Assembly: GCF_016433145.1 (NCBI RefSeq)
Contig: NC_058133.1
Location: forward strand, 188,962,552-189,026,551
DNA from: Gracilinanus agilis
Taxonomy: Eukaryota
Direction of reading: 5' to 3'
Length of the DNA stretch: 64,000 nt
Every line of letters starts with the position of its first letter. Positions within the stretch are counted from its first letter, which is position 1. Positions 3,779 through 59,708 of the stretch are shown here, piece by piece. Position numbers and translations under genes: made by a program. The notes beneath the pieces are model-generated. The model did not search any database. It worked only from the letters and a program-made list of their open reading frames with translations, and was not told the DNA's origin.

Positions 3779-6700
3779 TTAGAAGCCATAGTAGGAGAAT
3801 GGAGGCAGGTCAGGCACGCAGGCTGCCAAGTCCTGGAGGCAGGCGATGGGGTTGACATCGCAGAGCCCAGCATCCTGATCATCCCGAAAGTAAACAGCAT
3901 CAGGGGAGAAAGCGGAGGGGTCCTCGTCAAAGAAGTTGTAGGGCCTGAGGAAGAAACCGACGCCATTTCCCGGAGTCACAGTGTTGGGGATGTCCTCCGC
4001 ATGGGGAATATGCAGAAAGCTGGCGGTAACCCAGGCAACCAAGTCCTGAGGAAAAGAGGAGAGAATGAGAGCCAGTGAGGCGCCAACTGTACCTACTCCC
4101 GCCCTACCTGGAAGGAAAGAGGGAACACCCCCCCCCCCCCAGTGTCGCTCTCAGAGGACGGAACTGAGTTTNNNNNNNNNNNNNNNNNNNNNNNNNNNNN
4201 NNNNNNNNNNNNNNNNNNNNNNNNNNNNNNNNNNNNNNNNNNNNNNNNNNNNNNNNNNNNNNNNNNNNNNNNNNNNNNNNNNNNNNNNNNNNNNNNNNNN
4301 NNNNNNNNNNNNNNNNNNNNNNNNNNNNNNNNNNNNNNNNNNNNNNNNNNNNNNNNNNNNNNNNNNNNNNNNNNNNNNNNNNNNNNNNNNNNNNNNNNNN
4401 NNNNNNNNNNNNNNNNNNNNNNNNNNNNNNNNNNNNNNNNNNNNNNNNNNNNNNNNNNNNNNNNNNNNNNNNNNNNNNNNNNNNNNNNNNNNNNNNNNNN
4501 NNNNNNNNNNNNNNNNNNNNCGCCCCCCATCGCCCTAGCTGCTCCCTGGGTTATGAGGACAGGAGGGGTCTCCCCTTCCTCACTGGCCTGATGGATTCCG
4601 TCCTCACCACTCTGCTGAAACTCTGTGAGGCCATGGGTGACTGTGGTACCAAGGGCCTTTTTTCAGTCTTCTTCCTTAAATTCGGAGTCATTTTTAACAT
4701 TATGGATCACAGCATCCTCCTATTTTATTTTCTCATTCCTCGGCTTCAGAGGCATCACTTTCTCTGGGGTTCTCCTCTCCCCTCTCTCTTAATAGCTCCA
4801 TCTCTCTTTTTGTTCATTCCTCCGCATTAAGATAGATGTTCCTCTTTGGCCCTTGACTTTCTCCCTTTACATGCTTCCCCAGGTAGTCTTCTTCAACCCT
4901 ATAGCTTTCAAATATTACCCCCTCCTATCATCGTTGTTATTCAGTGGAGTCAGACTCTCCATGACCCTGTTTGGGATTTTCTGGGCAAAGATACTGGAGT
5001 GATGTGCCATTTCCTTCTCCAGTTCATTTTACAGACTAGGAAACTGAGGCAAACAGGGTGAAGTGACTTGCCCAGGGTCACACAGCTAGTAAGGGTCTGA
5101 AGTTAGATTTGAATTTAGGTCTTCCTGACTCCAGGCCTGGCACTCTATCCACTTCATCACTTAGCTGCCCACCTCTTTATCAGTAGAGATGTTTGTAAAG
5201 TATTTAGCATAGTGCCTGGCACAAGTAGGTAATTAATACTTATCTCTTCCCTTCTCTTCCCTTTATTCGACTGGACTCATACATCTATATCTCCAGCCCT
5301 GCCCTAAACTTTACATCAATGTCTACAACTGTCTCTAAGAAGTCTCTAGCTGGAGAAATACCTCAAGCTTGGGCTGTCCAAAAGAGAATTTTACTCTTAA
5401 CACTGCTCCTCCCTCAATTGTTTTTGTCACTGAATCATCTAGTTAGCCATATCCAATTGGTTTACCAAATTCTGTTTTTATACTTGAAACCTTTCATACA
5501 TCTGTCTTCTCCTCTCTGATCCCAGTTTTGCCATTCTAGTACTTATCTTCATTATCATTCTCTTGAAATATCAAATTAGCTTTCCAGGACTTTTTAGTCT
5601 TCACTCTTTCCTACTCTTAAATCGATTGTTTTCATTGCTGCCAACATTAAACTTTATGCATGAATCCAGGCATGGTTCCTCTATTCATATATCTTTAAAG
5701 CTGCTTATTGACTACCAAATGAAATTCTGGTATTCATGGCCTTCCACAACGTAGGCCCACACTGCCTTTCCAGCCTCATCGAACACTACTTTGTTCCATA
5801 GACTGCACTCCAATCAAACTGGACTGTCTCCTGTATATGTCCTGTACTCTCATGCTTGCATACCTTTGTTCACAGTGTTCCCTGTGTCAGGAATATGCTT
5901 GCTTCCCATCTTCACTGTGTCAGATATCACATTGAAAACTCAGTACATGAGTCAAATTTATAAGAATACAAAGCATTTCCCAATTGAAAAAATGGTCAAA
6001 GGATATGAACAAACAGTTCTCAGAAGAAGAAATTAAAACTATAATCATATGAAAAAATGTTTCAAGTCACTATTGATTAGAGAAATGCATTAAAACAACT
6101 CTGAGATACCACCTCACACCTATCAGATTGGCTAACATGACCAAAAAAGAAAATGATAAATATTGGAAGATGTGGGAAAATTGGGACACTAATCCACTGT
6201 TGTTGGAACTGTGAACTGATGCAACCATTCTGGAGAGCAAAGTGGAATGAGGTTCGAAGGGCCACAAAAATATGCATATCTTTTAACCCAGCAATATCAC
6301 TATTGGATCTGCATCCCAAAGAGATCAGAGATAAGGGAAGAAGACCTACCTGCATGAAAATATTTTTTGCAGCTCTTTTTGTAGTGGCAAAGAATTGAAA
6401 ACTGAGGGGTTGTCCATCACTTGGGGAATGGGTGAACAAGTTGTGGCATATGGTTGTAATGGAATACTATTTTGCTCCATAAGAAATGATGAACAGGATG
6501 AGGGCAAAAAAACCTGGAAAGACTTATATGAACTGATACAAAGTGAAGTGAGCACAACCAAGAGAACAATGTATACAGTAACAGAAATATTGTATGACGA
6601 TCACCTGTGAAGGACTGAACCATTATCAGCAAAGCAAGTTTCCAGGATAACCACAAGGGAATCACTATGAAAAAGCCCTCCACAGCCAAAGAAGGAACTG

Positions 6701-9700: not shown

Positions 9701-12700
9701 TTGCCTGTCCTACATCCCTCAAAACCACCCTGTATACCATTGCCAGAATTCTTACTGGAAACTATTCATGTTACTCCTAAGATCAAAAATCATCTTCTCA
9801 AGTTCAGATCAATATTTAAGGTCCTTCACTCTCAATAACCACCAGTCATCACCATACCTTTGCAGCTTTACCTCCTTGTTACTCTCCTCAAACTACAGTC
9901 AAGTGGGACTATTTCATGCCCACTAAACATAGCTCATGATGCTTGTCCCGCTTATAACTTTGGCTTTAAAAGCAGTGTTTGCTGTGCTCACTCCTTTTCC
10001 TACTGAATTCCTAGTCATTCCTTAAAGTCCAATTCAAATACTATATCATTCTGAGAATCTTCCTGGAGGATCTTACCAGGTCACCCTGGGTATTTTTTTT
10101 AAACCCTTACTTTCTGCCTTAGTATCAACTCTTAAGACAGAAGAGCATCAAGAACTAGGCAAAAGAGGTTGAATGACTTGCCTGGGGTCACACAAATAAG
10201 GAAGTATGTCAAATTTGAACCCAGGTTCCCAACTCTAGGCCTGGTACTCTTATCTATTATGCTACCTCCTACGGTCCCTAGGCATTGAATTTTGAGTCAA
10301 AGAACTTGGGCACAAATCCTGATGCTACTTCCTGTGTGATTTGGCAAGCAACTTCCTCCCTGGGGCTGTTTCCTCATTTATAAAATGAATGGGTTGTTAC
10401 CTAAATATCTTTTTAAATTAGGGAAAGGAATAATATTATAATTGTCTTGACTAGGGAAAAGAGGGATATTTTAATCAAACAAGTGAAAGTTATTGGAGAT
10501 AAAATGGTTTTGATTACACGATAAGATTTTACAATGCAAAAAATACTTCTGAAATTAAGGCATTTTGGGGGAAGTATTTAGAACAAATTTCAGATTAAAT
10601 CTAGCATACAAAATCTCTAAAGATGTTACATATATGTCACATGTGATCAGTGGAATGACTGAGACAATTCAGAAGAATTCTAATTGCTAATAATTAATTG
10701 GTAACCAGAAAAATGCAAATCAAGATAACCTTATGCTGGTACCACCTCATGCCTAGCCAGAATGAGAAAAACAGCAAAAATAATAAAATTCAAAATTGGT
10801 GGGGTTGCAAGGAAACAGTAACTTTTAAGACATCATTGGTAGAATTGCAGAATGGTACAGAGATTTTGGAGAACGGCATTATGTCAACATAAGACCAAAA
10901 AAAAAAGTCTTAACTTTTTACTCATAGGATTTTACCCATAAAATATCACAAGTGGGATAAAATATTTTAAAATATATTATAAAACATAAAATAACATGAA
11001 GTTATATTTCTATGAAAAGTATTCATAATTGTTTTATTTGCAATAGCAAAAAAAGTATATGCCCAAGAATGGCAAAATATAGTATGGTATATTATTGCAA
11101 TATTAGTTTTGAGAGCTGGTCTTGGAACTAGGAATACCTGGGTTCAAGCCTTGTCACACACTGGCTATAAATTGCAGAGGTAACACTCTGCATTGGCAGA
11201 GGGAGTTTCCTCATCTGGAGTTCTCTAGATCAATGAAATCATAGACCTAGTCCCTCTCTATGGAGCTATTGAATGTGTATGTGCTTAAACACACATACAT
11301 ATATACGGTAATGTTATATACACACAAAGTATACAAGGAAAAATGGAAAGACAAATGGGAAAAGATGTAAATTCAAGAAAACTGAATCAGAACTTTATAC
11401 ACTGATTTATGGAAGGGAAGGAGGGAGGAAGGGAAGAAGGGAGAGGAAAGGGAAGAAGAAGTAGGAAAAAGGCAGAATGGAGCTAAGACAGACTGGAAAG
11501 AATACAAAAAGCAAACACATTTCATTTGGCATTTAATTTGCTTTTTAGTTATTTAAAATTAGAATAAAATTAGCAAAATAAAAAAAAAAAATAAAGGGTT
11601 GGAATAGACGATCTCCAAAGTTCCCTCCAGCTCCAAATCCTGTGCTGATGACTTTGGCAGATCTCAATGCCAGTCTCCATCCTCTGTACACTGAATGATG
11701 GGGAGAAAACTCCCATTACATGCATGAAATATATCTCCCATGTAACTTGCAGGAATAATGGGATGACTTTCAAATGACTGTTGAGATGCTTAAAGGGACA
11801 TCACTCGGATCAATGGAAATCGTATGCTGCAAGGGAGCTTCCTTCTCCTATTAGTTCCCAACTTCTTCCTATTCCATTCACTCTGCTGCACACTGGTAGC
11901 CTTTATTTTTAGGCTCAGATACATAACCATTGAGAAAATACACATAAAGTGTGCCATAAATGCCAGCTATTATTATAGTGTTGGACTTAGTAAGAAACAG
12001 GAAAACTTAAGAGTTCAAACCATGGCCAATGTGGGGAATCTCCTTCAGGTTTCATTTGTGCAATGGGGAATAGTATCTGTTATTCCTGCCTCACATTGGG
12101 TTGTTGAGCTCAACTGAAATCTGTTAAGGGCTCTACAACATGAGTGATATTAAGTGACACAGGACACTTTTCTACCTTCCCTTTGGCTCCAACAGCCATT
12201 CTGCTGGTAACCACCCAACTCACCTGGAACACCTTGACCCCTGTAGGTTTATGCAGTTGCCCACAGCTCCCACCTTGCAACATCACTAAGCCCCAGATCA
12301 CACTGCGAGCAGAGAAGATCAAAGCTTAGGCAGAAACAGAAAACCTAAAATAATTTAATAATGCTAACTTGAGAATGTGAGGGGGGGAAGCTTGTCAGAT
12401 GTCTGATAATCCGTTTCATGGGCTGTGTCTGATCCATCATAAAATGGCCAATATAATCCCTTAGGCCACTCCTACTGAATGCATACTATTTGTGTGGTGC
12501 TCTCATTAGGTCCTCCCACTCTGGCCTCCTTCCAGACTGGTTATTTTTGATCCTCCTCCCTGGAGAGTCCTTGTTCCCAATCCCAAATTACCTGCTACAT
12601 CCAGGTCCAGCTTGAAGTGAAAGGCATGAGTGTGCACTGTCCCCAGAACTTGTCCCCCCACTCGGTTCCCAAAGTGAAGGGAATTGTCTCCCCCACCTAG

Positions 12701-14182
12701 GAAGGCTGTATTGATATAGCCTGTAGCATGGACTCGTCCCTCAAGTGCTCCATGAGGGTGTAATACAAAGTCCCAGATGTAGTCATAGTTGCCCACAGAT
12801 GACACTGACCGGATAACAAGAGCTGAACCAACCACAGCACCAAAGTAACGACCCTGTGCCTGGTTATGGTGTCTTCGAAGAGGCATCCCCGGTGCCTCCT
12901 CAAATACACACAGGGCCCCAGGGAGCAACTGAGCTGTCCCCTGGTCCACCAGCACATAGGCATCCACCATGGTGGCTAAATAGGGGCAATCCACTCCCCG
13001 AACGAGCCCCCGGCTGTGTCGGCCAATCCCATAAGTGCTATCCAAGTAATGGGTCATCATTGTCTTAGGTGAGTCAGCACCATAGATGGAAAGACATTCC
13101 TGGACACTGATCTCATAAGCTACCCGCTCCCCCTGGAACTGGACATCAAAAATCCTCATGCCACTGAATACCCCAAGGCTAAAGGTAAATGTCCAAAGTG
13201 GAGAGGCCACTTGACTCCCCTGGACACTATATCGAGGACCCTGGGGTGAGAACTGTAGAGGAGGAGGAGGACCTGGAGGTACCTGAGGCCTCAAGGATGA
13301 TGATGCTCCATCTGGTAAGGGTGGAGCGATCCTAACCACATCCACTTGGCCAGCCTTGAACTTTTGCTCCAATTGGCCCAGGTCCTCATAGTAGTAGCCT
13401 TGATAGTAGACCTTCTGGACAAACCATCGAGCAGGGTCCAGGTCCCCATGATCCAAAAGCAGCTCCAGTCCCACAGGATGCAAAAAAAGGCCAGCACCTG
13501 AGACATTGTGGTAAAGGGCAAGCCAGGTGGTACGCTCTCCTGATCCAAAACCATGAGAAGGTGAGGGCACAGGTGCCAAAGAAGAGCCATCGTAACTGAA
13601 GACCGAAGTCAGGAAGACAGGTGCTTTGGGCAGCTCCACTTCCTTCAAGTGCCTCCAAAGCTGGGCAAACTCAGTCCTAAGCATAGGGCGCCGATAATAA
13701 GGGAGAGGACCCCCATAGCGCTCTACAGTCACATCTCGAAGATAGGAGAGGCTTGGCAGCGCCCCCACCACAAATTCACTCACATTGGGCTGGGCCTGAT
13801 GGCCAAAGAAGACCACAACTAGAGCTTCACGGGGAGGCGGTGGTTTTCCCCCATCCAGGTAGGCCAGTGCTGCGGCTTTGGAAGGCAGCTGTAACTCCAC
13901 TGAGTAGACACAGTTGTCTGATGGGCTGGCATGGCGTGCATCTACAAACCCTGTCCCCAGCTGCTGGGTCAGGAAGCGCATCACTGAGGCCAGCTCCTCC
14001 TTGGTCAGATCTGAGAACAGTCGGCTCCTGTTAGAATGCAGCCAAAACTGACTGGCAGGGGACCTTGAGGGGCAGTGGGGAGGTTGCCTGGAGATACCCC
14101 CACCAGTCAACAGGACACAAACCAGAGCAAAAATGGTGACAACAGAGAGAGCAAGGAGGACCAGGGCCACCCTTGTATTCAT
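3779..14182 (-). CDS. AOC2: Amine oxidase copper-containing 2 (retina-type amine oxidase), complete, 757 aa
   Basis: Exons 14182-12592, 8424-8139, 7915-7786, 4045-3779; all GT-AG; total 2274 nt. TPQ motif [10 protein letters not shown] (Gly, AOC2-type), HTH, LHIPH, and C-terminus [17 protein letters not shown], all diagnostic of AOC2. Confidence 0.96.
4930..5170 (-). mobile_element. MAR1-type marsupial CORE-SINE
   Basis: RTE-derived tail GGCAAAGATACTGGAGT...GCCATTTCCTTCTCCAG joined to the CORE sequence GAGGAAACTGAGGC...AAGTGACTTGCCCAGGGTCACACAGCTAG. Confidence 0.7.
5950..6975 (+). mobile_element. 5'-truncated LINE-1 (ORF2 C-terminus plus 3'UTR) inserted in older L2-like sequence, in AOC2 intron 3
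   Basis: Typical L1 ORF2 end: [52 protein letters not shown] and [12 protein letters not shown] motifs, with an A-rich end. Confidence 0.85.
7336..7530 (+). mobile_element. Full-length SINE1 (opossum type) with target-site duplication
   Basis: GGGGCAGCTGGGTGGCTCAGTGG head and GGAAGGTAAGGGTTTAAAAAAA tail; TSD ATAAGATCTG at about 7327-7336 and 7533-7542. Confidence 0.9.
9130..10270 (-). mobile_element. Cluster of three SINE copies (about 9130-9325, 9480-9652, 10095-10270) in AOC2 intron 1
   Basis: Reverse-complement SINE hallmarks: AACCCTTAC..., AAGGGCTAGGCAA..GGTTAAGTGACTTGCCCAGGG, CCACTGAGCTACCTAGCTGCCCC. Confidence 0.8.
10450..11100 (+). mobile_element. Old, decayed LINE-1 ORF2 3' fragment
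   Basis: AAAATGCAAATCAAGATAACC...TACCACCTCATGCC resembles the L1 ORF2 end; no intact ORF. Confidence 0.55.
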
Positions 14183-16211
14183 AGTGAATATAAAACAGTG
14201 CAGTATTGGGGGTCCCACAGAAAGTTCTCCTAGTTGCTTCTCCCAGCTCCAGGAATTGACTCTGGGGGAAAAAAGCTACTCCCTGGGTTAGGACTGAAGC
14301 TCTCCACCCTCTGGTCTAGAGATGTAATTTCCCCTATAATTGGCTTAGTTGGTTCTGCCCTCTCCATTTTCCTCTTCTGTGGTTTGGCTTCGATAATTAC
14401 CACCCCCACCCTCCACCCTCCAGAAGAGCCCCAGTACACCAGTGAGGCAGGTTCCAACAACAATAAGAACTGTAGGTAGTACTTTTTGTCATTTCCAGTG
14501 TTGTTGGTTAAAAACTTTAATTTAGGGGTTTCCTTTAGTTGAAGGAGAGCATTGACCAAGGGTAAAGAAATTTTTAGAATCTTGAAGTACATCCAAACAG
14601 GTGCTGGAAAGATTCCTGTTTTAAAAGTCTCCTTATGAGGCAGCCTTGTGCAGAGGTATAGAGTGTACTAGATTGAGTCAGAGAACCTGAAATGATGGAC
14701 TGTACCAGTTCTATGCATTAATATCCCCTGAGACTCAGGGAAAAGCTACTTTACCTTTTTTGTAGGGGAGGGGAAGGTGGAAGGGGTCTCAGTTTCCTCA
14801 CCTACGAAATGGAATGGAAATAGTTGATTTCTAAAGTCCTTTACTAAGTGATGCTGTATATATGCCTGTCTCTTCATAGAACCTTGGGTGAGAGTTTCAT
14901 TTTTAACACAATCCAAAGAGGAGTATAATAGAGGGAAAGCTAACATCTGTACCACCCTTCTTCCTTACCCCTCAGCTACTTATTTCCTTAGGGCAAATAA
15001 ACTAGGGCCTATAAGCCTTTCAAAGAAAGGGAAATCCTAAACTCCAGGGCCAGGAAACATTTCTGCACCCCCCCCCCCCACCATTCATATTCCAAGGAAG
15101 CCCTCTCCCTTTCTAATCTCCATTCTCCAGTCACTTTTTTGAAAAACTGATTCTGAGAGGTGAAAAACAATAAATCCTAACTGAAATTTAATTATTTGGG
15201 GGTTGGTTTTCTTTTGAGTGGCAGCAAGGTTAAGCTAGTATCAGACTATGACTGGGTAATGAGAGTCCCAGCCAAACATACAGAAAACAAACAAAAAAAA
15301 CCTATCAGTCATGAAAATGACTCCAGATTAAGTATCTCTATATACCATCCTTAAGGAATTGAAAACACTGGTCCAAAAATCAGAGCTCCAACCCTGTCTC
15401 TGGCACACACTGTGTCTCTGGGTCCTTGAGTCAATCCCTTAATGTCTTCCTGGTGCTCTAGTTAACTCTCCAAATATAGGTACAAATCAACAATGATAAA
15501 ATGAAGTTCCTGGCTGGGGGCTCCCACACCAATGAAATCACAAGTCTGGTCAAAAGTAAAACCAAGCCCAGTATGTTGTTAAGGAAGCTCTCTCCTTGAC
15601 CACCCCACCTCCCCCATGTACAAGGGCTCTATGGTGCAGCAGGCTGAGCACCAATCAAGCTAATTAGGATGCTTTGAGTCTTGGTTTTGCACTAACTAGC
15701 TAATATGACCTTGGACAAGTTATTCGGCTTCTTGGGGTGTCAATTACCTCCTTTATCAAACAGGAGTGTGGTGTTTAGATGACCTTCCAGCTCAAATACT
15801 GTAGGTCTCTCTCAGGTTCAGTGATGAGGAAGCTCCGCACCAACTACATGAGGGCATAGCAGCCCCTACTGGTAGCTCATGAGAATCACTGGGGGAGAGA
15901 GCACAGATGCCAGAAGAGAAATGGTTGGGGAAAGGAGAGGAGCCCCTCAGATTTTGGAGGTGTCATTTTCCAAACATAAGCCAGGTCAGACAGTGGGGCC
16001 ATCAGAGAAAGGGTCCATCCCCACCCCTGATACTGGAAGACGGTGTTAGATCAATCTTTATATATCATGGAAGGGGGGGTGGGGGTTGGAGGTTGCTCAC
16101 CTCATTTGTGGCCAGCCTGTAAGGGTGTGTGTGTGTATGGAGATTGGCCTCAGTTGTCTGAGGATCGCACTGGGGTCTGTGACTTTAAAAAAAGGTCAAA
16201 GTACCTGTATT

Positions 16212-16217: not shown

Positions 16218-17737
16218 AATTTCTTGACATGGTAAAAGAATTTTACATTACGATCCAGGGAAGCAGGGGTAGGATAAGGATTGGGGAAGCTGGGTTGGGG
16301 ACATCAGAACAATCCAACAAACAAAAAAGCAAACAACACCAAGAAACACATGGTGGAGAGAGCAGGTAGGTTGGGGATGGGGACAGGGTCTGGGGAGGCC
16401 CAACTAAAACACAGTTGGTTTGTTACTGAATATTATTCATGGGAAGACAATGTCCTGACTCCTTCACTATAACATAATGGGACAGACAGTGATGCATCCC
16501 AGGTGGAAACCAGCAGGAAAGTGAGGAGAGAAAAACAGAAGTAAGGGATGATGGAAACAAACACAGAAAGAGCCACATACATGGGAAGGGTTGATTGACT
16601 GAAATAAGTTGACTCTCTCTGAGGGGTAACAGACTTGGCAGGTGGGGTGGGAGGTCAAAGAACCTGCAATAATGGGATATATCCAGAGTTCTCGAGAGAA
16701 AAACAGCAATTCTTCCATTTTTCTGATCCACCCTGCAGATTTTCATTCACATCCCTACCCTCCTTGGGAAAAAATATAAATAAGAAAAATATTCCAAAAG
16801 GAAGAGGTCCCAAAGTAGTATCTGGATCTAAGCTTCAGAACACACCAACCTCCCATTTGTAACTGATTTAAAGAGAGCCAAATAGTTGGGGCAGCAGTCT
16901 TTGTAACAATTCCCAACAAGACTCTGAGTCACAGGATGATGGGTGCTCTGGTTCCCTCCCTCCTTCCCATCTCTCTGCTCAGGTGGAACAGACTTGCACC
17001 TCTCAGCTGAATCCTGTTCTGCTTAGTCTGGCCACCTGACTCTTGGAGCTAAGATAAACTCTTGAGAGAGAATGGGAGGTCTGATGACAGGGTAAGGAAT
17101 GTGTGGTGGCAGAGCTACATAAGAAAAACTAAAAACCTCACAATAAAGACATCAAAAAAAAACCTCTCAAAGAGACAGTAGAAGGTGTAATATTTCCCGA
17201 GGTCCTGATGGTAGGGAGATGCAATAAAGGAAATACAACCTCTCCTTCCCCTTCTCCCTCCCCTAGCCACACACATCATCACCAGGGATCCTCTATGCCA
17301 TAGAAGCCAGGATAGGCCCCCTATTCCCTCAAAGAAACATAGCTCTTTCACTTCCAACTTTTCCAACATCTAACCAACTAACTGAAAAGGAGACATACAG
17401 ACCAAGAGAAGACCAGGGGGTCGGGTGGGGAGGGAGAAAGAGTTCAAGAGAAAGTGCATGTGTGCGTAGACACACATATGCAAACACTCCAGAAATGAGT
17501 CTTGACAACAGGGCAGGTTGGGAATGGGGACTAGGGTAGGAGAGTTCCTGAGGCCTGAAATAAGAGGTAAACACGTCACAGNNNNNNNNNNNNNNNNNNN
17601 NNNNNNNNNNNNNNNNNNNNNNNNNNNNNNNNNNNNNNNNNNNNNNNNNNNNNNNNNNNNNNNNNNNNNNNNNNNNNNNNNNNNNNNNNNNNNNNNNNNN
17701 NNNNNNNNNNNNNNNNNNNNNNNNNNNNNNNNTGGCC

Positions 17738-20700
17738 TCAGTACAGCGTCTCTGCATTGCTGCTCCGGGGCCGCTTGATCTTCTCAATGTTTTTCAGGAT
17801 CATGTCATGTAAAGTGACCTGAGAGGAGAGAGGTTGGGGGAGGGGGGAAGGACAATCACCCACCTGGCTCTCTTTCAGCATAGATATAGGGACTTCAAAC
17901 AGAGCTTTCAGGTCAAGAGATGGGATCACTGGCTATCAACCACCAATTTCATGGCACTAAACCCTCAGAAGAGGAGTAGAATCTAACCCCCCTCCCACAG
18001 GAGATGACTTTTGAGAGAAGCCAGGACAACTGAGAGGGTGATATGGTAAAGGAGTCAGTCACTCACGTATTGGTTCCTCAGTTCTGATATGATGAGCCGA
18101 AGGCTGATATATTCCTTCTCATCAATCTCTGTCACTGTGCGTCGATAGTCTTCCTAAAGAATGGTGAGAAAGGAAAGAAAAGGGAGAGGAAAAGGTGGAT
18201 TGGCTGTTTTGCAGGGCTAGGCTGAGTTTCTGCTTGAATATTTAAGGTTTTTTCTCTCAATTTTGTATTTCCCATCCCCACCTCCCATCATAATTTTCTC
18301 ACTTACCACATGGGGATATTTGGCTATTTTAGAAACCAATTTGGCTCTTGTAATGTAATATCTGGAAGGAGAAAGAGGAAAAAGCAAGTAATACAAGTAG
18401 TCAAAAACTAAATTTCACAATCCCTGGGCCAGCCCCAAACTCCTACCTAGAAATCTGGTCTAGATAAGATGCAGCTTCACTCTCCACAGTCCTTAGTTCT
18501 GCAACTGTCTCCTCCTGTGAAGGATTGAAGGTCAAGTGTGTAAAAGCAAATCTCTCTATTCTGGCACCCCATAGGATATTAGCTAGGTGTCACCCAAAAA
18601 GAGAATAGGCAGAATAGCTGGGAAAATGTCTCAACCTCTTCTTCTAGGTATGTTCTCCACCCCTTTAATGACCATGTAGTGAAACTTTCACACAAGGATT
18701 TATAAACCATCAAGCAAACCCTATTTTGCAGAAGTATGAAGTCATGGAGGATATAAAGACAGAACAAGACCAAATATCTCCTCTCAATGAGATGATAAAA
18801 TCATTGAGAGATTATCATCTAAGTTCAGGTAATTGTTCTAACTTTATAACCCAATCCAGAAGGTATTACCTGGATGGATACACCAAAGTTATTCCCATCT
18901 TCTATTCTGGGGATAAGGAGCTGAACCCACATTTTGACCTGGAAAGAAAACAAAAACAAGGGAATAAGTGGCCTTTCTGTTGTAGAACATTACTTATGTG
19001 AAAGCCATTGCTGTACAGAGGAAGGAAAAAGGGTCACCAAACAGAGTAACTTAGGGGGCCCTTTTCACCTCAAAAATAAAAATAAATACACAAAACAAAT
19101 CCCTCTCCTCTTAAACTGGCTAATTTCCCTCAATGCATCATCATTTGCACACCCAACCCATTCCATGCTGGCCTTACCGTATTACATTTCTCGATCAACA
19201 GCCGGATTTCAGGTTTCACCTTTTCAATAATGTCCACCAGCTGCTGGTTGCTTTTTAACATCCCATTAGGCATCACAAACACCTTGGTACCTGGTGGTAA
19301 AGGAAACTAATTTTGTCTGGAAGAAGTGGCCATTTTTTTCTCTCCTCTGCCCCAGGGTCTAGAATGCCAATTTCCCCCCCCCATCCCCCCCCGCCCCAAA
19401 CTCAAGACACTAATGCCCAGCCAGGCCTTCCTTTCCTCCATTGGAAAAGCTGTTTTGGAGAGGCTCAAAATTCCAAAAGCAACTACATTCAACTCTGGAC
19501 ATGAAAAAAATAGTTCAACCTAAATGGGGCTTATAGAAGTAAGTTTGGAGAAAGGAATTGTACTCACCCTGGAAGGCCTCCTCACATTCATCCAATTTCC
19601 TCTTCTTCAAAGTGGGCTGAGGACATACAGAGGTTAAGCGTTTTCTACCTCAAAGACATCAATATTTTAATTACTTTATCCTACCCTTCCCAAAGTCCCC
19701 AAAACTAGACTGAAAGTTTCCCCACTGTTGATTTCACTCAATTTACTAAATATTTGCATGTTGTCTTTGTGCATGTACTAAGATACTGGGGACAAGAAGA
19801 CAAAGTAAACAAGAAATCTGCTCTTAAGGAATTAACAGTGAGCAAATGATAAAGATAGCTTGGTATAAAGCTACATATAAATAATACCAATGAACATTAA
19901 GCAAAGAATGATCAATGTGAGTTTAATTTATTTGAGTATTCTTGCTTCAGGTCTACAAGTAGCTGATATTCATGTAGTGTTGGCCTTAAGGTTTACAAAG
20001 TGCTTTATACATATTATCAAATTTTTATATACATATGTTTAAGACAGAAAGAAATAAGCTAAGAACTTCCTAATCATTGACAAGAGTACGAGATACAAAC
20101 AGGTAAAAAAGTCTCGCCCAGAACCAGATATCCTGTAACCTCAAGAGAAGGTGTGTGATGACTTCAGTACTGCTGGATCTCACAACAGCTTTAGGAACAG
20201 GATAGTTAAGAGTCTTCTCATGTTACAAATGCAGAAAACAAGAGAGATTATGCTAAACCCTCATAAAGAAACTGGGTCCTAGTCTCTGAAGTAGTTTCTT
20301 ACACTGTTCCCTAATGCAAACAGAACTTTGGTCTAGAGGCATCTATTGGTCAAGAACAAAGAATAGTAAAGAGAAACTTACACCATCCAATCCATCATGG
20401 CTATTGGTAAGAAGGATGGGATCAGGAACAGGGAGATTCATGTCTGAGTGGATCTGAGTTAAATCATGGATGTTTAAGATAGGCTCCTAGAAGAAGGAAA
20501 AAAATCTGTATGTTTTCAAGTTAAATATAAGTGAAAGATGAGTCAAGTACAGAGGTGGGGGGCTACGGGTATGGAATGTCATTATCAGATGGTAGTCACA
20601 ATCAGCTAATCATGCTTAACTGTTTTATTCTTTGTAATAAGGAAAAGGAAAGGCTTGGAGGGGTGGACATACAGTAATATCTGGGATGTTAAAACATAAA

Positions 20701-21870
20701 AGTAAAACATTTTTTAATGTGTCAGGAAGGGAATGTGTACATCTGAATCAAACACAATGTAGATAATTCCAATTTGCTCAAGAGTCCAACATCCTGAGGG
20801 AACTGGGGATAATGGTAGCTAAATAAGAAAAGGGAGGGACAGGAAGTATCTCTCACCTTCAAAAAACTATCAAGCTCTAACAACTTCTTTGGGAAAAAAT
20901 TTGCCACCAAGTCTTCTGCCTGAAAGGAACATACACAGTAAAGTTGACTTAATGCTTTTTGGAGGACTCTTGACCTCCAATCTACACACTCCCCAAGTGG
21001 CCTCCTCTTTAGAGTCGCCCCAAACTAAGTCTTCTTGTCCCACCCAACAAAAAGCATCACTCACCTCACTTGTGATCCGCTCCCTGAAAGAATCAACCTG
21101 CAAAGAGCAAAAACACACATCAGGACTTCCTCCAGGGTCTGGTAGCAAGGGGAAGAGATGTATCCTCAGAAGCAAAACAAAATAACAACAAAGTACCATT
21201 CCTAGTGCCACAGCTCACCTTGTAGTTGTAATGGGAAGATGAGAGACCCCCAGATTCTAAGTATTTTATTTTTTTGAGGATCCATTTCTCCATCTTGGGG
21301 GTGGTTCCCACGGAATAGGGGCCAACACTTGTCAGTTTTTTCCTCCCTCCCTATGTCAGCTTGTTCCCCCAGGTTAAGAGGGGTAGCAGGGAAGCGGGGA
21401 CATGGGGGCTGTGATCTCACAAACGCACCCCCCAACCCTCAGTGACGATGCTAGTGTAACCCCAAGCTCCTGTGGGACCTTGGCGCTGGGAGGGGGTGGT
21501 GGCGCCTCACGATCGATAAGAAGAGGGTTGGTTTTCGCTGCGGCCTGTTTCCCCCCGGCCCAACACGTGTCCGCCACGGCCTCCCCCCCAAGCCCAGCGC
21601 GGGGAAAAGCAACAGCGGCTCCACAGTAGTAGCATCCCTGAGTGAAGCGACGCTCTGACCGTCCCCAGGAAGAGCCGGTGGCCAGCCGGGAAAGGGGGAA
21701 GGTTGGGGCGGGCCCAGGGCAGAGGGAGGCGGCGCCGGACTCGGAAGTGCCCGCGGGAGACAAAGGCGGCCGCCGCGGGGTCAAGAACCGGCCCGGCGGG
21801 GTCGCGGGGAGGAGGCGGGGGCTGCTACCTTGAGCTTCACTTCCTGATCCACCTTCAGCAGCGAGGCCAT
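17738..21870 (-). CDS. PSME3: Proteasome activator subunit 3 (PA28gamma/REGgamma), complete, 254 aa
   Basis: Exons 21870-21829, 21097-21065, 20919-20857, 20486-20382, 19616-19568, 19290-19178, 18938-18870, 18514-18447, 18361-18307, 18153-18067, 17818-17738; total 765 nt. MASLLKVDQEVKLK...KRPRSSNAETLY*; NLS KKRKL. Confidence 0.98.
21219..21293 (-). CDS. PSME3: Candidate alternative first coding exon of PSME3 (MEKWILKKIKYLESGGLSSSHYNYK)
   Basis: 75 nt from ATG to a strong phase-0 donor AAG|GTGAG at 21219/21218, in frame with exon 2 (VDSFRER). Nearly identical to my recollection of the human isoform-3 N-terminus. Confidence 0.7.
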
Positions 21871-22560
21871 GGCCGGGGCGGGCCGCGTCCACTCCGCTGG
21901 GGGCTCCGGGGTGGGGGACCGGAGGACCTGGGCACGGGGGCAGGTTTCGGCTTCCTTCGGGCCTCCGCCGGCCTGTCTGGTTCCCTCGCTTCCTCGCTGC
22001 CTGCCTCCCGGGCGCCTACCTGCCTCCCTGCCTCCCTGCCTGCCTACCTCCCTGCTCGCTCACTCGCTTGCCCGCCCGGCTTCCGCCGCTCGCACCGGAA
22101 GTCGCGTCACAGCCAATCGCCGGGGGGCTCGCGGGCGGCACGTGCCCGGCGCGCGCTCGTACGCACGCGCGCCCTAACGCGCCGCGCCAGCCCGGGCAGG
22201 AGGCCAGGGAGCCGCCGTGTCTCTCGCCTCTGGTCTCCGCAGCCGCTCAGGGCTGAGAACCGGAGTCGGGGCGCCCTAGGCGGCTAATAGGAGCTTGTGC
22301 CTTTCTCCTCTGGGCCCCGGGGCATTACGTTGAGAGTGAGAAAAGCCTGTGGGGACCCGGGCATCATTGTCCGTCGCCGCATCTCTGACGGCCCCCGAGG
22401 CGCCAGTGCGCCGTCGCGCCCCAATGACGTCAGTACTGCGGGCCAGGACCCGGCCTGTCAGTGGAACCCAGCAGGTGCAGAAAGCCCCGGGCGGGGGCGG
22501 GCCAGTCCTGATCCTCGGCTATGCCCAGGTGCCAAACTCATAGTCTGTGAGGAGACCCGT
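21370..22560 (-). promoter_or_regulatory. PSME3 CpG island/promoter
   Basis: Very CpG-rich. ETS CCGGAAGT 22095-22102, CCAAT 22113-22117, palindromic E-box GGCACGTGCC 22137-22146, CCAAT plus full CRE TGACGTCA 22421-22432. Confidence 0.8.
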
Positions 22561-24019
22561 CTCCTCTTGTTTTTCCCCAATCTGGGAGCTCCCTGAGGGC
22601 AGCGACGGACTCATCATTAGATTCAAAGGGTCAGATTTCAAAGAAAACTTGAGATCATCTCGACCAATCTCCTTTTAAAGATGAGAAAACAGGCCCAGAA
22701 ACGGAAAGTCGATGGAGCAAGGTTACTTACACAAATGCTAGAACCTGGTTTAGAAACTGTAGCCCAAACCAGAAACTGCACTCTTCTCTAGTTTAGTATC
22801 GTGCACAGTGAAGTCTTGCCACACGTCATTCTCTTTGGGCTTTCCCCATCCGCACTTTGTTTTGTAACTCTAAAATACAACTCTTGTGATATTTATTACA
22901 GTGATATTTGGGTCTTAATCCTCGCCCCCCCCCCACTTGACTGTAATCTATGAGGAAAAGGGTCTTATCTAAATATTGTATCGCAAGCACTTTGGTTTGC
23001 ACGTGAAAAAACCCTGTGTCAGAAGAGGATTTTGCATAAATAATGAGTCCTGATTTGTGAATGGTTTTTACAGTTCCCTGAGTAATGGGTAGAGAAGTCT
23101 GGCATAGTATTCTACAACCCGAGCTACTTCTTTTCTTGTAGTGCTGACTCTGGAGTAAGGGAAGACCTGGGGTTCAAATTCAACTGCTTACACCAAGATG
23201 TTAGCTTTTACTATTCAAAATTAGTAAGAGGAAATGTGTGAAAAATTATAGCTTTATTTTACAGTAATCTGAAGTTTGCAAAATGCTTTATGTAGTTGAT
23301 TCTCAACTCCATGAAATAGATACTATGATTATCCCGTTTTAAGAATATAAAAAGTCTTAGAAAGGAGAAATTCATTGTCTAGGCTGTCACAAGAGGATGT
23401 GAACCTAGTTTTTCTTTTTCTGACTCTTAAGTCCAGCATTCTTTTATATCTTATATGATACTCTTTTCTGGGTGCTTGTTAGTCTAGTCAATAAACATTT
23501 ATTACACTCTTACCATGTGCCAGCCACTGTTCTAAGCACTAGGGATACAAAAAGAGATAAAAGACAGTCCCTGCCCTCACAAACTTCTCAGTCTGATAGG
23601 GAATACAACAAGCAAACAAATATGTACAATGATTGAGAAAGAAGGTACTAGAATTAAGAGAAGTTGAGAAAGTCTCACTGTAAAAAATGGAATTTTAGTT
23701 GGGACAAAGGAAGCCAGAGATGAGGAAAGAGCTTTCCAGTCAGAGAAAATGCCTGGAGCAGAGAGATAAGTGTATTTGTTGATTGGCAAGGAGACCAGTG
23801 TCACCCAGATAAGGGAGTGTGTGGCTGAGAGAAAAAGTGTAGGAAGGCTTTCATGAGGAACCTCTCCTAAAAGGAAATTAAAGACCATTGCACTTCAAGT
23901 ACCAGCACTGTGGATCCCTTTTATGTTCCACTTACTCTCAGTAACTCAAGCCTCTCTTGTCAGATGGAGTTTTAGATCATAGAATCTGAATTGAAATGCA
24001 CCACTGGAATCATCTAGTC

Positions 24020-44880: not shown

Positions 44881-59708
<14,828 letters not shown>

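Follow-up and report, generated by a model that had tools for sequence, protein, structure and literature searches.

A coding exon within intron 1 of PSME3, shared by marsupials and placentals, is predicted to give PA28gamma a second N-terminus

PA28gamma (REGgamma), the product of PSME3, is a nuclear activator of the proteasome. It has been studied extensively and is involved in the turnover of p21 and p53, in chromatin, in cancer and in fertility. To our knowledge, experiments on this protein have essentially always used its 254-residue form. In Gracilinanus agilis, the first intron of the gene holds a second candidate start, an ATG (21293-21291, minus strand) that opens a frame of 25 codons reaching to 21219 and ending at a splice donor in the context AAG/GTGAGC (here and below, a slash marks a splice junction), in phase with exon 2 (phase 0). 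The initial annotation of the window, as the whole 64-kb stretch of DNA analysed is called here, had proposed this frame as a hidden alternative first coding exon, and its placement of the ATG and of an in-frame donor 121 nt before exon 2 is base-exact on the minus strand. The locus raises the questions of whether these 75 bases encode protein, whether they are used as a first coding exon or as an internal one, and what the resulting N-terminus might mean for the protein.

The features of the locus are collected in Table 1. Ten of the eleven coding exons of a 265-residue form of PA28gamma are found on the minus strand of the window, from 21293 to the PSME3 stop codon at about 17741, and they equal the marsupial gene model P0015, annotated as 'proteasome activator complex subunit 3 isoform X1 [Monodelphis domestica]', 265 residues long and belonging to a UniRef cluster labelled Metatheria (accessions XP_007482215.1, XP_031822189.1, XP_044532869.1 and XP_051850343.1). 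When the window exons are compared with this model exon by exon, with exon 3 excluded, 244 of 244 residues are equal, including the marsupial-type PTLKKRK segment, a match that supports the marsupial origin assumed in the initial annotation. The first 25 residues of the model are identical to those of the window exon and are joined directly to exon 2 (K25-V26 junction). PA28gamma relatives carry the Pfam domains PA28_N (PF02251) and PA28_C (PF02252). Runs of N are present in the window at 17582-17732, 4172-4520 and 55858-55985, the first of them in the 3' UTR, immediately past the stop codon of PSME3. Downstream of PSME3 lies an open frame of 589 codons (12509-14275, minus strand) that, going by its sequence and by the gene neighbourhood, looks like the long first exon of an AOC2/AOC3-like copper amine oxidase gene.

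Table 1. Positions of the alternative exon and of the surrounding PSME3 features in the window.
Feature	Position	Strand	Details
Alternative 5' coding exon of PSME3	21219..21293	minus	ATG plus 24 codons, MEKWILKKIKYLESGGLSSSHYNYK; residues 1-25 of P0015
Exon 1, coding part, canonical PSME3	21829..21870	minus	MASLLKVDQEVKLK; phase-0 donor AAG/GTAGCA at 21829/21828
5' splice site GTGAG of the alternative exon	21214..21218	minus	kept in 8 of 8 species
Intron from the alternative exon to exon 2	21098..21218	minus	121 nt; 84-102 nt in other species; not conserved
PSME3 exon 2, VDSFRERITSE	21065..21097	minus	acceptor tttgcag/GTT; phase 0
PSME3 exons 4-11	17741..20486	minus	match P0015 residues 58-265
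PSME3 exon 3 (21 residues)	in or beside 20876-20923	minus	left out of all comparisons
In-frame TAG	21351..21353	minus	19 codons upstream of the alternative ATG
AG dinucleotide abutting the ATG	21294..21295	minus	candidate cassette 3' splice site; in 8 of 8 species; AAG here, GAG in placentals

Taken by sequence alone, a frame of this kind is within chance, as ATG-opened frames of 20-40 codons ending in AG/GTRAG occur three times in the 64-kb window when both strands are counted; the significance of the exon comes instead from its conservation. Comparison with seven other mammals drew on contigs (L001-L010) of PSME3 intron-1 DNA, recovered as host DNA in metagenome or Logan assemblies. None of these contigs was taken to be human, since the peptides they encode are of the pig/cattle, bat and rodent types and differ from the catarrhine one. 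When positions 20940-22600 of the window were searched by blastn against two of these contigs (L001 and L002), three strong blocks were found, namely the promoter with exon 1, exon 2, and the stretch 21295-21214. The latter is the lone strong match within intron 1 (82 nt, 88-89% identity, E of about 1e-25), the second-best one being 29 nt long with an E of 0.004, and it is bounded on one side by the AG before the ATG and on the other by the splice donor. In a MAFFT alignment of 7 species, identity to the window was 0.76-0.98 for the alternative exon, 0.96-0.99 for the canonical exons and 0.11-0.71 for the remaining intron, and the coding part of canonical exon 1 has 96% DNA identity to six other mammals. 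The placement of the exon is also similar in 8 species, 482-538 nt past exon 1 and 84-121 nt ahead of exon 2. The marsupial-eutherian conservation put forward in the initial annotation is borne out, with the ATG, the 25 codons free of indels and the donor kept in all eight genomic sequences.

At the protein level, the same peptide is carried by seven short open reading frames (P0001-3, P0005, P0006, P0008 and P0009), each of which then runs into unrelated sequence; three of them came from a word search with a 76-residue stop-free stretch and four from an exhaustive search of representative sequences with 30 residues. Two further candidates from the exhaustive search, P0004 and P0007, were rejected as low-complexity false matches. 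The peptide is absent from models of a penguin (P0033) and the Komodo dragon (P0037) that hold extra intron-1-derived sequence, and in this sample of non-mammalian models no evidence for the exon was found outside marsupials and placentals.

The pattern of change within the exon is that of coding sequence. Between the window and L001 there are nine differences, seven of them at the third codon position and all seven synonymous; the other two fall at the first position (E13Q and S19A), and none at the second. By the Nei-Gojobori method the same pair gives a dN/dS of 0.03-0.04 with a dS of 0.8-1.1, and in Fisher's test the excess of synonymous over non-synonymous change has p = 5e-5. Across 8 species, third positions make up 12 of the 20 variable columns (p = 0.013). 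The dN/dS below 1 that was anticipated for this peptide is in this way recovered, at about 0.04 with a dS of about 0.8. In comparison with L001, the alternative exon has a pS of 0.50 and a pN of 0.033, and canonical exons 1, 2 and 4-7, compared with the same contig, have a pS of 0.40 and a pN of 0.009, so that constraint on the alternative exon is only slightly below that on a protein that ranks among the most conserved in vertebrates. Of the six possible frames, a single one is open in all species, the other two sense and the three antisense frames carrying stops. Stops and frameshifts in other mammals, looked for as possible evidence against a functional peptide, number zero in the eight genomic sequences and in the 23 distinct peptide variants, all with an open frame free of indels. 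Thirteen residues are invariant among these variants (M1, E2, K3, W4, K7, K8, K10, Y11, S14, G15, G16, L17 and Y22), and residues 19-24 form the variable part. On these comparisons, the 75-base frame is a genuine protein-coding exon kept by selection across marsupials and placentals, and purifying selection acts on its amino-acid sequence.

A conserved non-coding element, such as a promoter, an enhancer or a splicing regulator with an incidental open frame, would be the main challenge to this conclusion. The exon lies at the edge of a CpG island in a first intron, where regulatory elements are common, other short motifs in intron 1 are conserved too, and the near lack of synonymous change in exons 1 and 2 indicates that the gene's 5' end is indeed constrained at the nucleotide level. 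Such an element would not, however, account for the accumulation of synonymous changes at third positions (7 of 9 against L001, 12 of 20 columns in 8 species), for a pS (about 0.5) no lower than that of the canonical exons, for a conserved block whose limits coincide with the ATG side and the splice donor, or for a frame that is open and indel-free in 23 variants while the other five contain stops. This explanation is considered extremely improbable.

The 5' end of the gene shows some further peculiarities. The coding part of exon 1 and exon 2 have 98-100% DNA identity to a placental contig, with one synonymous change in about 16.6 synonymous sites, and the pS of exons 4, 6 and 7 is 0.43-0.74. 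This suggests an extra nucleotide-level constraint at the PSME3 5' end, perhaps tied to the choice between alternative 5' exons or to translation start. In the MAFFT alignment of 7 species, a conserved intron-1 motif, CGTTTGTGAG(A/C)TCAC, is found at 21411..21425 on the minus strand, about 120 nt upstream of the alternative ATG, in a region (21425-21399) that also gives a weak blastn match; it is possibly a promoter or regulatory element. A second intron-1 motif, CTTTGTCT, is located at 21765-21758 on the minus strand, about 65 nt past the exon-1 donor. Both motifs are shared with six placentals and are candidate promoter or splicing elements.

The exon is not hidden, as had been supposed, but is already known and present in public gene models, marsupial ones included, with RefSeq-type models of more than 20 species containing it. 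Such NCBI 'X' models are predictions. The exhaustive search of representative sequences returned no full-length protein with the exon, just the short intron open reading frames, as the full-length isoforms fall in the same 50% clusters as the canonical form. They were reached instead by using a 213-residue stop-free stretch of L006 as a region-limited query and then listing the clusters. The 265-residue form is modelled in more than 15 placental species, among them pig, cattle and ferret (a UniRef cluster of 29 Eutheria), bats, hamsters, spiny mouse, hedgehog, mole, pocket gopher and colobine monkeys (P0020), as well as in the bilby. The bilby peptide (P0027) differs from that of the window at one position (I9T) and the placental peptides at 2-7 positions, the catarrhine model P0019 having four differences (E13Q, S19A, H21Y and N23S). 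Human PSME3 isoform 3 (UniProt P61289-3, RefSeq variant 3) presumably has the same architecture, with a 25-residue N-terminus in place of 14 residues, for a total of 265. The peptide that the initial annotation gives for the human isoform, ending in SASYYSYK, is found letter for letter in P0019.

Variations on this exon are also seen among the models. Isoform X4 of Sarcophilus harrisii (P0022) lacks exon 3 and extends the alternative exon to a donor 30 nt downstream of the usual one; past the donor present in the window, this model reads VSRGTSNSFL where the window has VSCGTRNGTL. The Sarcophilus-type donor is absent from the window, which has no in-frame GT at +30. Models of 230 residues from bats and mouse (P0010-12 and P0029) contain the alternative exon but lack exon 4, the source of part of the homolog-specific insert.

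With regard to how the exon is used, the reading held to be highly probable is that 21293-21219 is an alternative 5' coding exon of PSME3 that serves as the first coding exon of a 265-residue product. A transcript devoid of the canonical ATG would carry 21293-21219 as its first coding exon, having probably started within the intron, where the CpG island ends on its downstream side. Splicing would join the donor at 21219/21218 to the exon-2 acceptor at 21097, and translation from the ATG at 21293 would give the 265-residue PA28gamma; for this genome, both the transcription and the translation of the exon are inferred. The 14 residues encoded by canonical exon 1 would be swapped for 25, leaving everything from exon 2 onward unchanged, that is, the rest of helix 1, the homolog-specific insert, the activation loop and the C-terminus. 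The replacement of the N-terminus agrees with the annotated marsupial model P0015, in which 25 residues stand for the canonical 14.

Several features of the sequence around the ATG bear on this reading. The start context at 21293 has an A at -3 and a G at +4, and a purine at -3 with a G at +4 is retained across all species compared; this strict retention, together with that of the ATG itself, fits a start codon. The ATGs found upstream in intron 1, at 21635 and 21403, open short frames that stop before the alternative exon. The in-frame TAG makes an unspliced N-terminal extension of the frame impossible. The observed/expected CpG ratio falls from 0.79 (21500-21699) to 0.28 (21300-21499) and to 0 (21100-21299), so that the alternative exon sits at the 3' edge of the island, where the initial annotation had suggested a possible tissue-specific promoter.

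The same exon might instead be spliced as an in-frame cassette, from exon 1 (21829/21828) to the AG at 21295-21294, through the 75-nt exon and on to exon 2. The product would be a 279-residue PA28gamma with 25 residues inserted between K14 and V15, which keeps the canonical N-terminus and its lysines. Its 75 nt correspond to 25 codons in frame with exon 1. In each of the eight species the AG abuts the ATG and follows a pyrimidine-rich stretch, and it is precisely at this AG that conservation sets in. This junction has in fact been modelled (NCBI/GenBank) in Dipodomys, Ochotona, Arvicanthis, Marmota and Galemys (P0028, P0035, P0038, P0039 and P0031, respectively). In the 279-residue 'isoform X1' of Dipodomys ordii, Ochotona curzoniae, Arvicanthis niloticus and Marmota flaviventris, the same 75-nt exon with the same donor is internal and gives a 25-residue insertion after K14, whereas in the window it is read as a new N-terminus. 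The catarrhine model P0019 also joins exon 1 to the alternative exon, in this case via an acceptor 87 nt further upstream; a longer internal exon of that type is ruled out in the window by the in-frame TAG.

The acceptor that the cassette would require is, on the other hand, a poor one. AAG in the window and GAG in placentals are disfavoured acceptor triplets, and the pyrimidine tract is interrupted, with a Y fraction of 0.60 versus 0.75 for exon 2, while the nine other PSME3 acceptors examined in the window are all CAG or TAG, constitutive and preceded by long pyrimidine tracts. The marsupial models retrieved all start at the ATG of the exon and none has a cassette, and the strictly retained ATG in a Kozak-type context (purine at -3, G at +4) is consistent with initiation there. 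Cassette splicing is judged rather unlikely, and it may also occur side by side with first-exon use. The claim of an alternative 5' coding exon holds at its core: the 265-residue models (P0015, XP_007482215.1) agree with it, and the models of five placental species show the exon as a cassette.

The stretch 21219-21500 is contained in 19 sequence runs at 0.96-1.0 of the sampled words, a result that fits a 5' UTR, a retained intron or DNA. Of these runs, 14 are guessed to be RNA, and some have contig totals of just 18-38 Mb, which suggests transcriptomes. The exon could be transcribed and spliced and still yield little or no stable protein, as a low-level or regulatory transcript, in which case the gene models would mostly propagate a single cDNA-based annotation. 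No peptide or paper was found for the 25-residue N-terminus, the literature having been searched by peptide and by database identifiers, and a PDB sequence search with the 25 residues gave no match. The 25-residue N-terminus is not described in two PA28gamma reviews examined for isoforms and splice variants (PMC7915322, PMC7662426), one of which mentions five transcript variants in no detail. Furthermore, all three matches of the first word search, within its visible range of 42-133 residues, run into the intron, and spliced partial products number zero. Against these observations, purifying selection at the amino-acid level, over a dS of about 0.8-1.1, would scarcely be expected unless the exon is translated, and a transcript with little or no protein is considered quite unlikely, though not to the degree of a non-coding element.

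What the new end would do to the protein can be approached through the segment that it replaces. Putative SUMO sites of PSME3 include K6, K12 and K14 (PMC9882985). SUMOylation of PA28gamma is reported to increase its stability and to move it to the cytosol (PMC7662426), and contacts of the N-terminal part of helix 1 with neighbouring subunits, on the exterior of the heptamer, have been described (PMC7915322). In first-exon use, the segment replaced would be the start of helix 1, and the three lysines predicted as SUMO sites would be gone from the 265-residue form; the 279-residue form would keep K6, K12 and K14, pushed 25 residues away from the helical body. The 265-residue variant would then plausibly form rings of a different stability and be localised or stabilised differently through SUMO; the initial annotation had proposed possible effects on localisation, heptamer assembly or 20S activation.

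The amphipathic helix that the initial annotation had attributed to the new N-terminus is not supported statistically. The hydrophobic moment of the 25 residues, with a maximum muH of 0.55, was matched by 767 of 5000 shuffles (15%). The net charge of the peptide is +3. An AlphaFold2 model of P0015, built with a 20-sequence alignment, places a helix at residues 2-13, followed by an interruption at SGGLS and by helix 1 from residue 19; as the mean pLDDT of the model is 55.7 and that of the N-terminus about 50, this arrangement is no more than a hint. The invariant M-E-K-W..KK.KY..SGGL motif could be a partner-binding or targeting module.

N-terminal proteoforms that originate from alternative first exons or promoters constitute a general class (PMC10267514, PMC13082882). 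PSME3 resembles the members of this class in having two N-termini from one gene, with the rest of the protein identical, and is unlike them in that the variant end is short, very strongly conserved and located on a ring-forming proteasome activator. We give roughly even chances to the 25-residue N-terminus defining a functionally distinct PA28gamma proteoform, kept through therian evolution and not known to have been studied at the bench.

The presence of the exon in this genome is an ordinary feature that is already annotated. What is added here is a clean demonstration of amino-acid-level purifying selection on the exon, together with the observation that gene models treat the same exon either as a new N-terminus or as an insertion in frame. 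The alternative N-terminus found in the databases is not annotation noise: it is held nearly as tightly as the rest of PA28gamma, over a divergence at which the surrounding intron has ceased to align, and this makes it a reasonable and cheap target for a PA28gamma laboratory. If it is a distinct proteoform, the consequences could be a changed heptamer stability, SUMO-dependent distribution between nucleus and cytosol or substrate choice, and the first-exon and cassette uses of one exon could yield two differently regulated versions of the activator.
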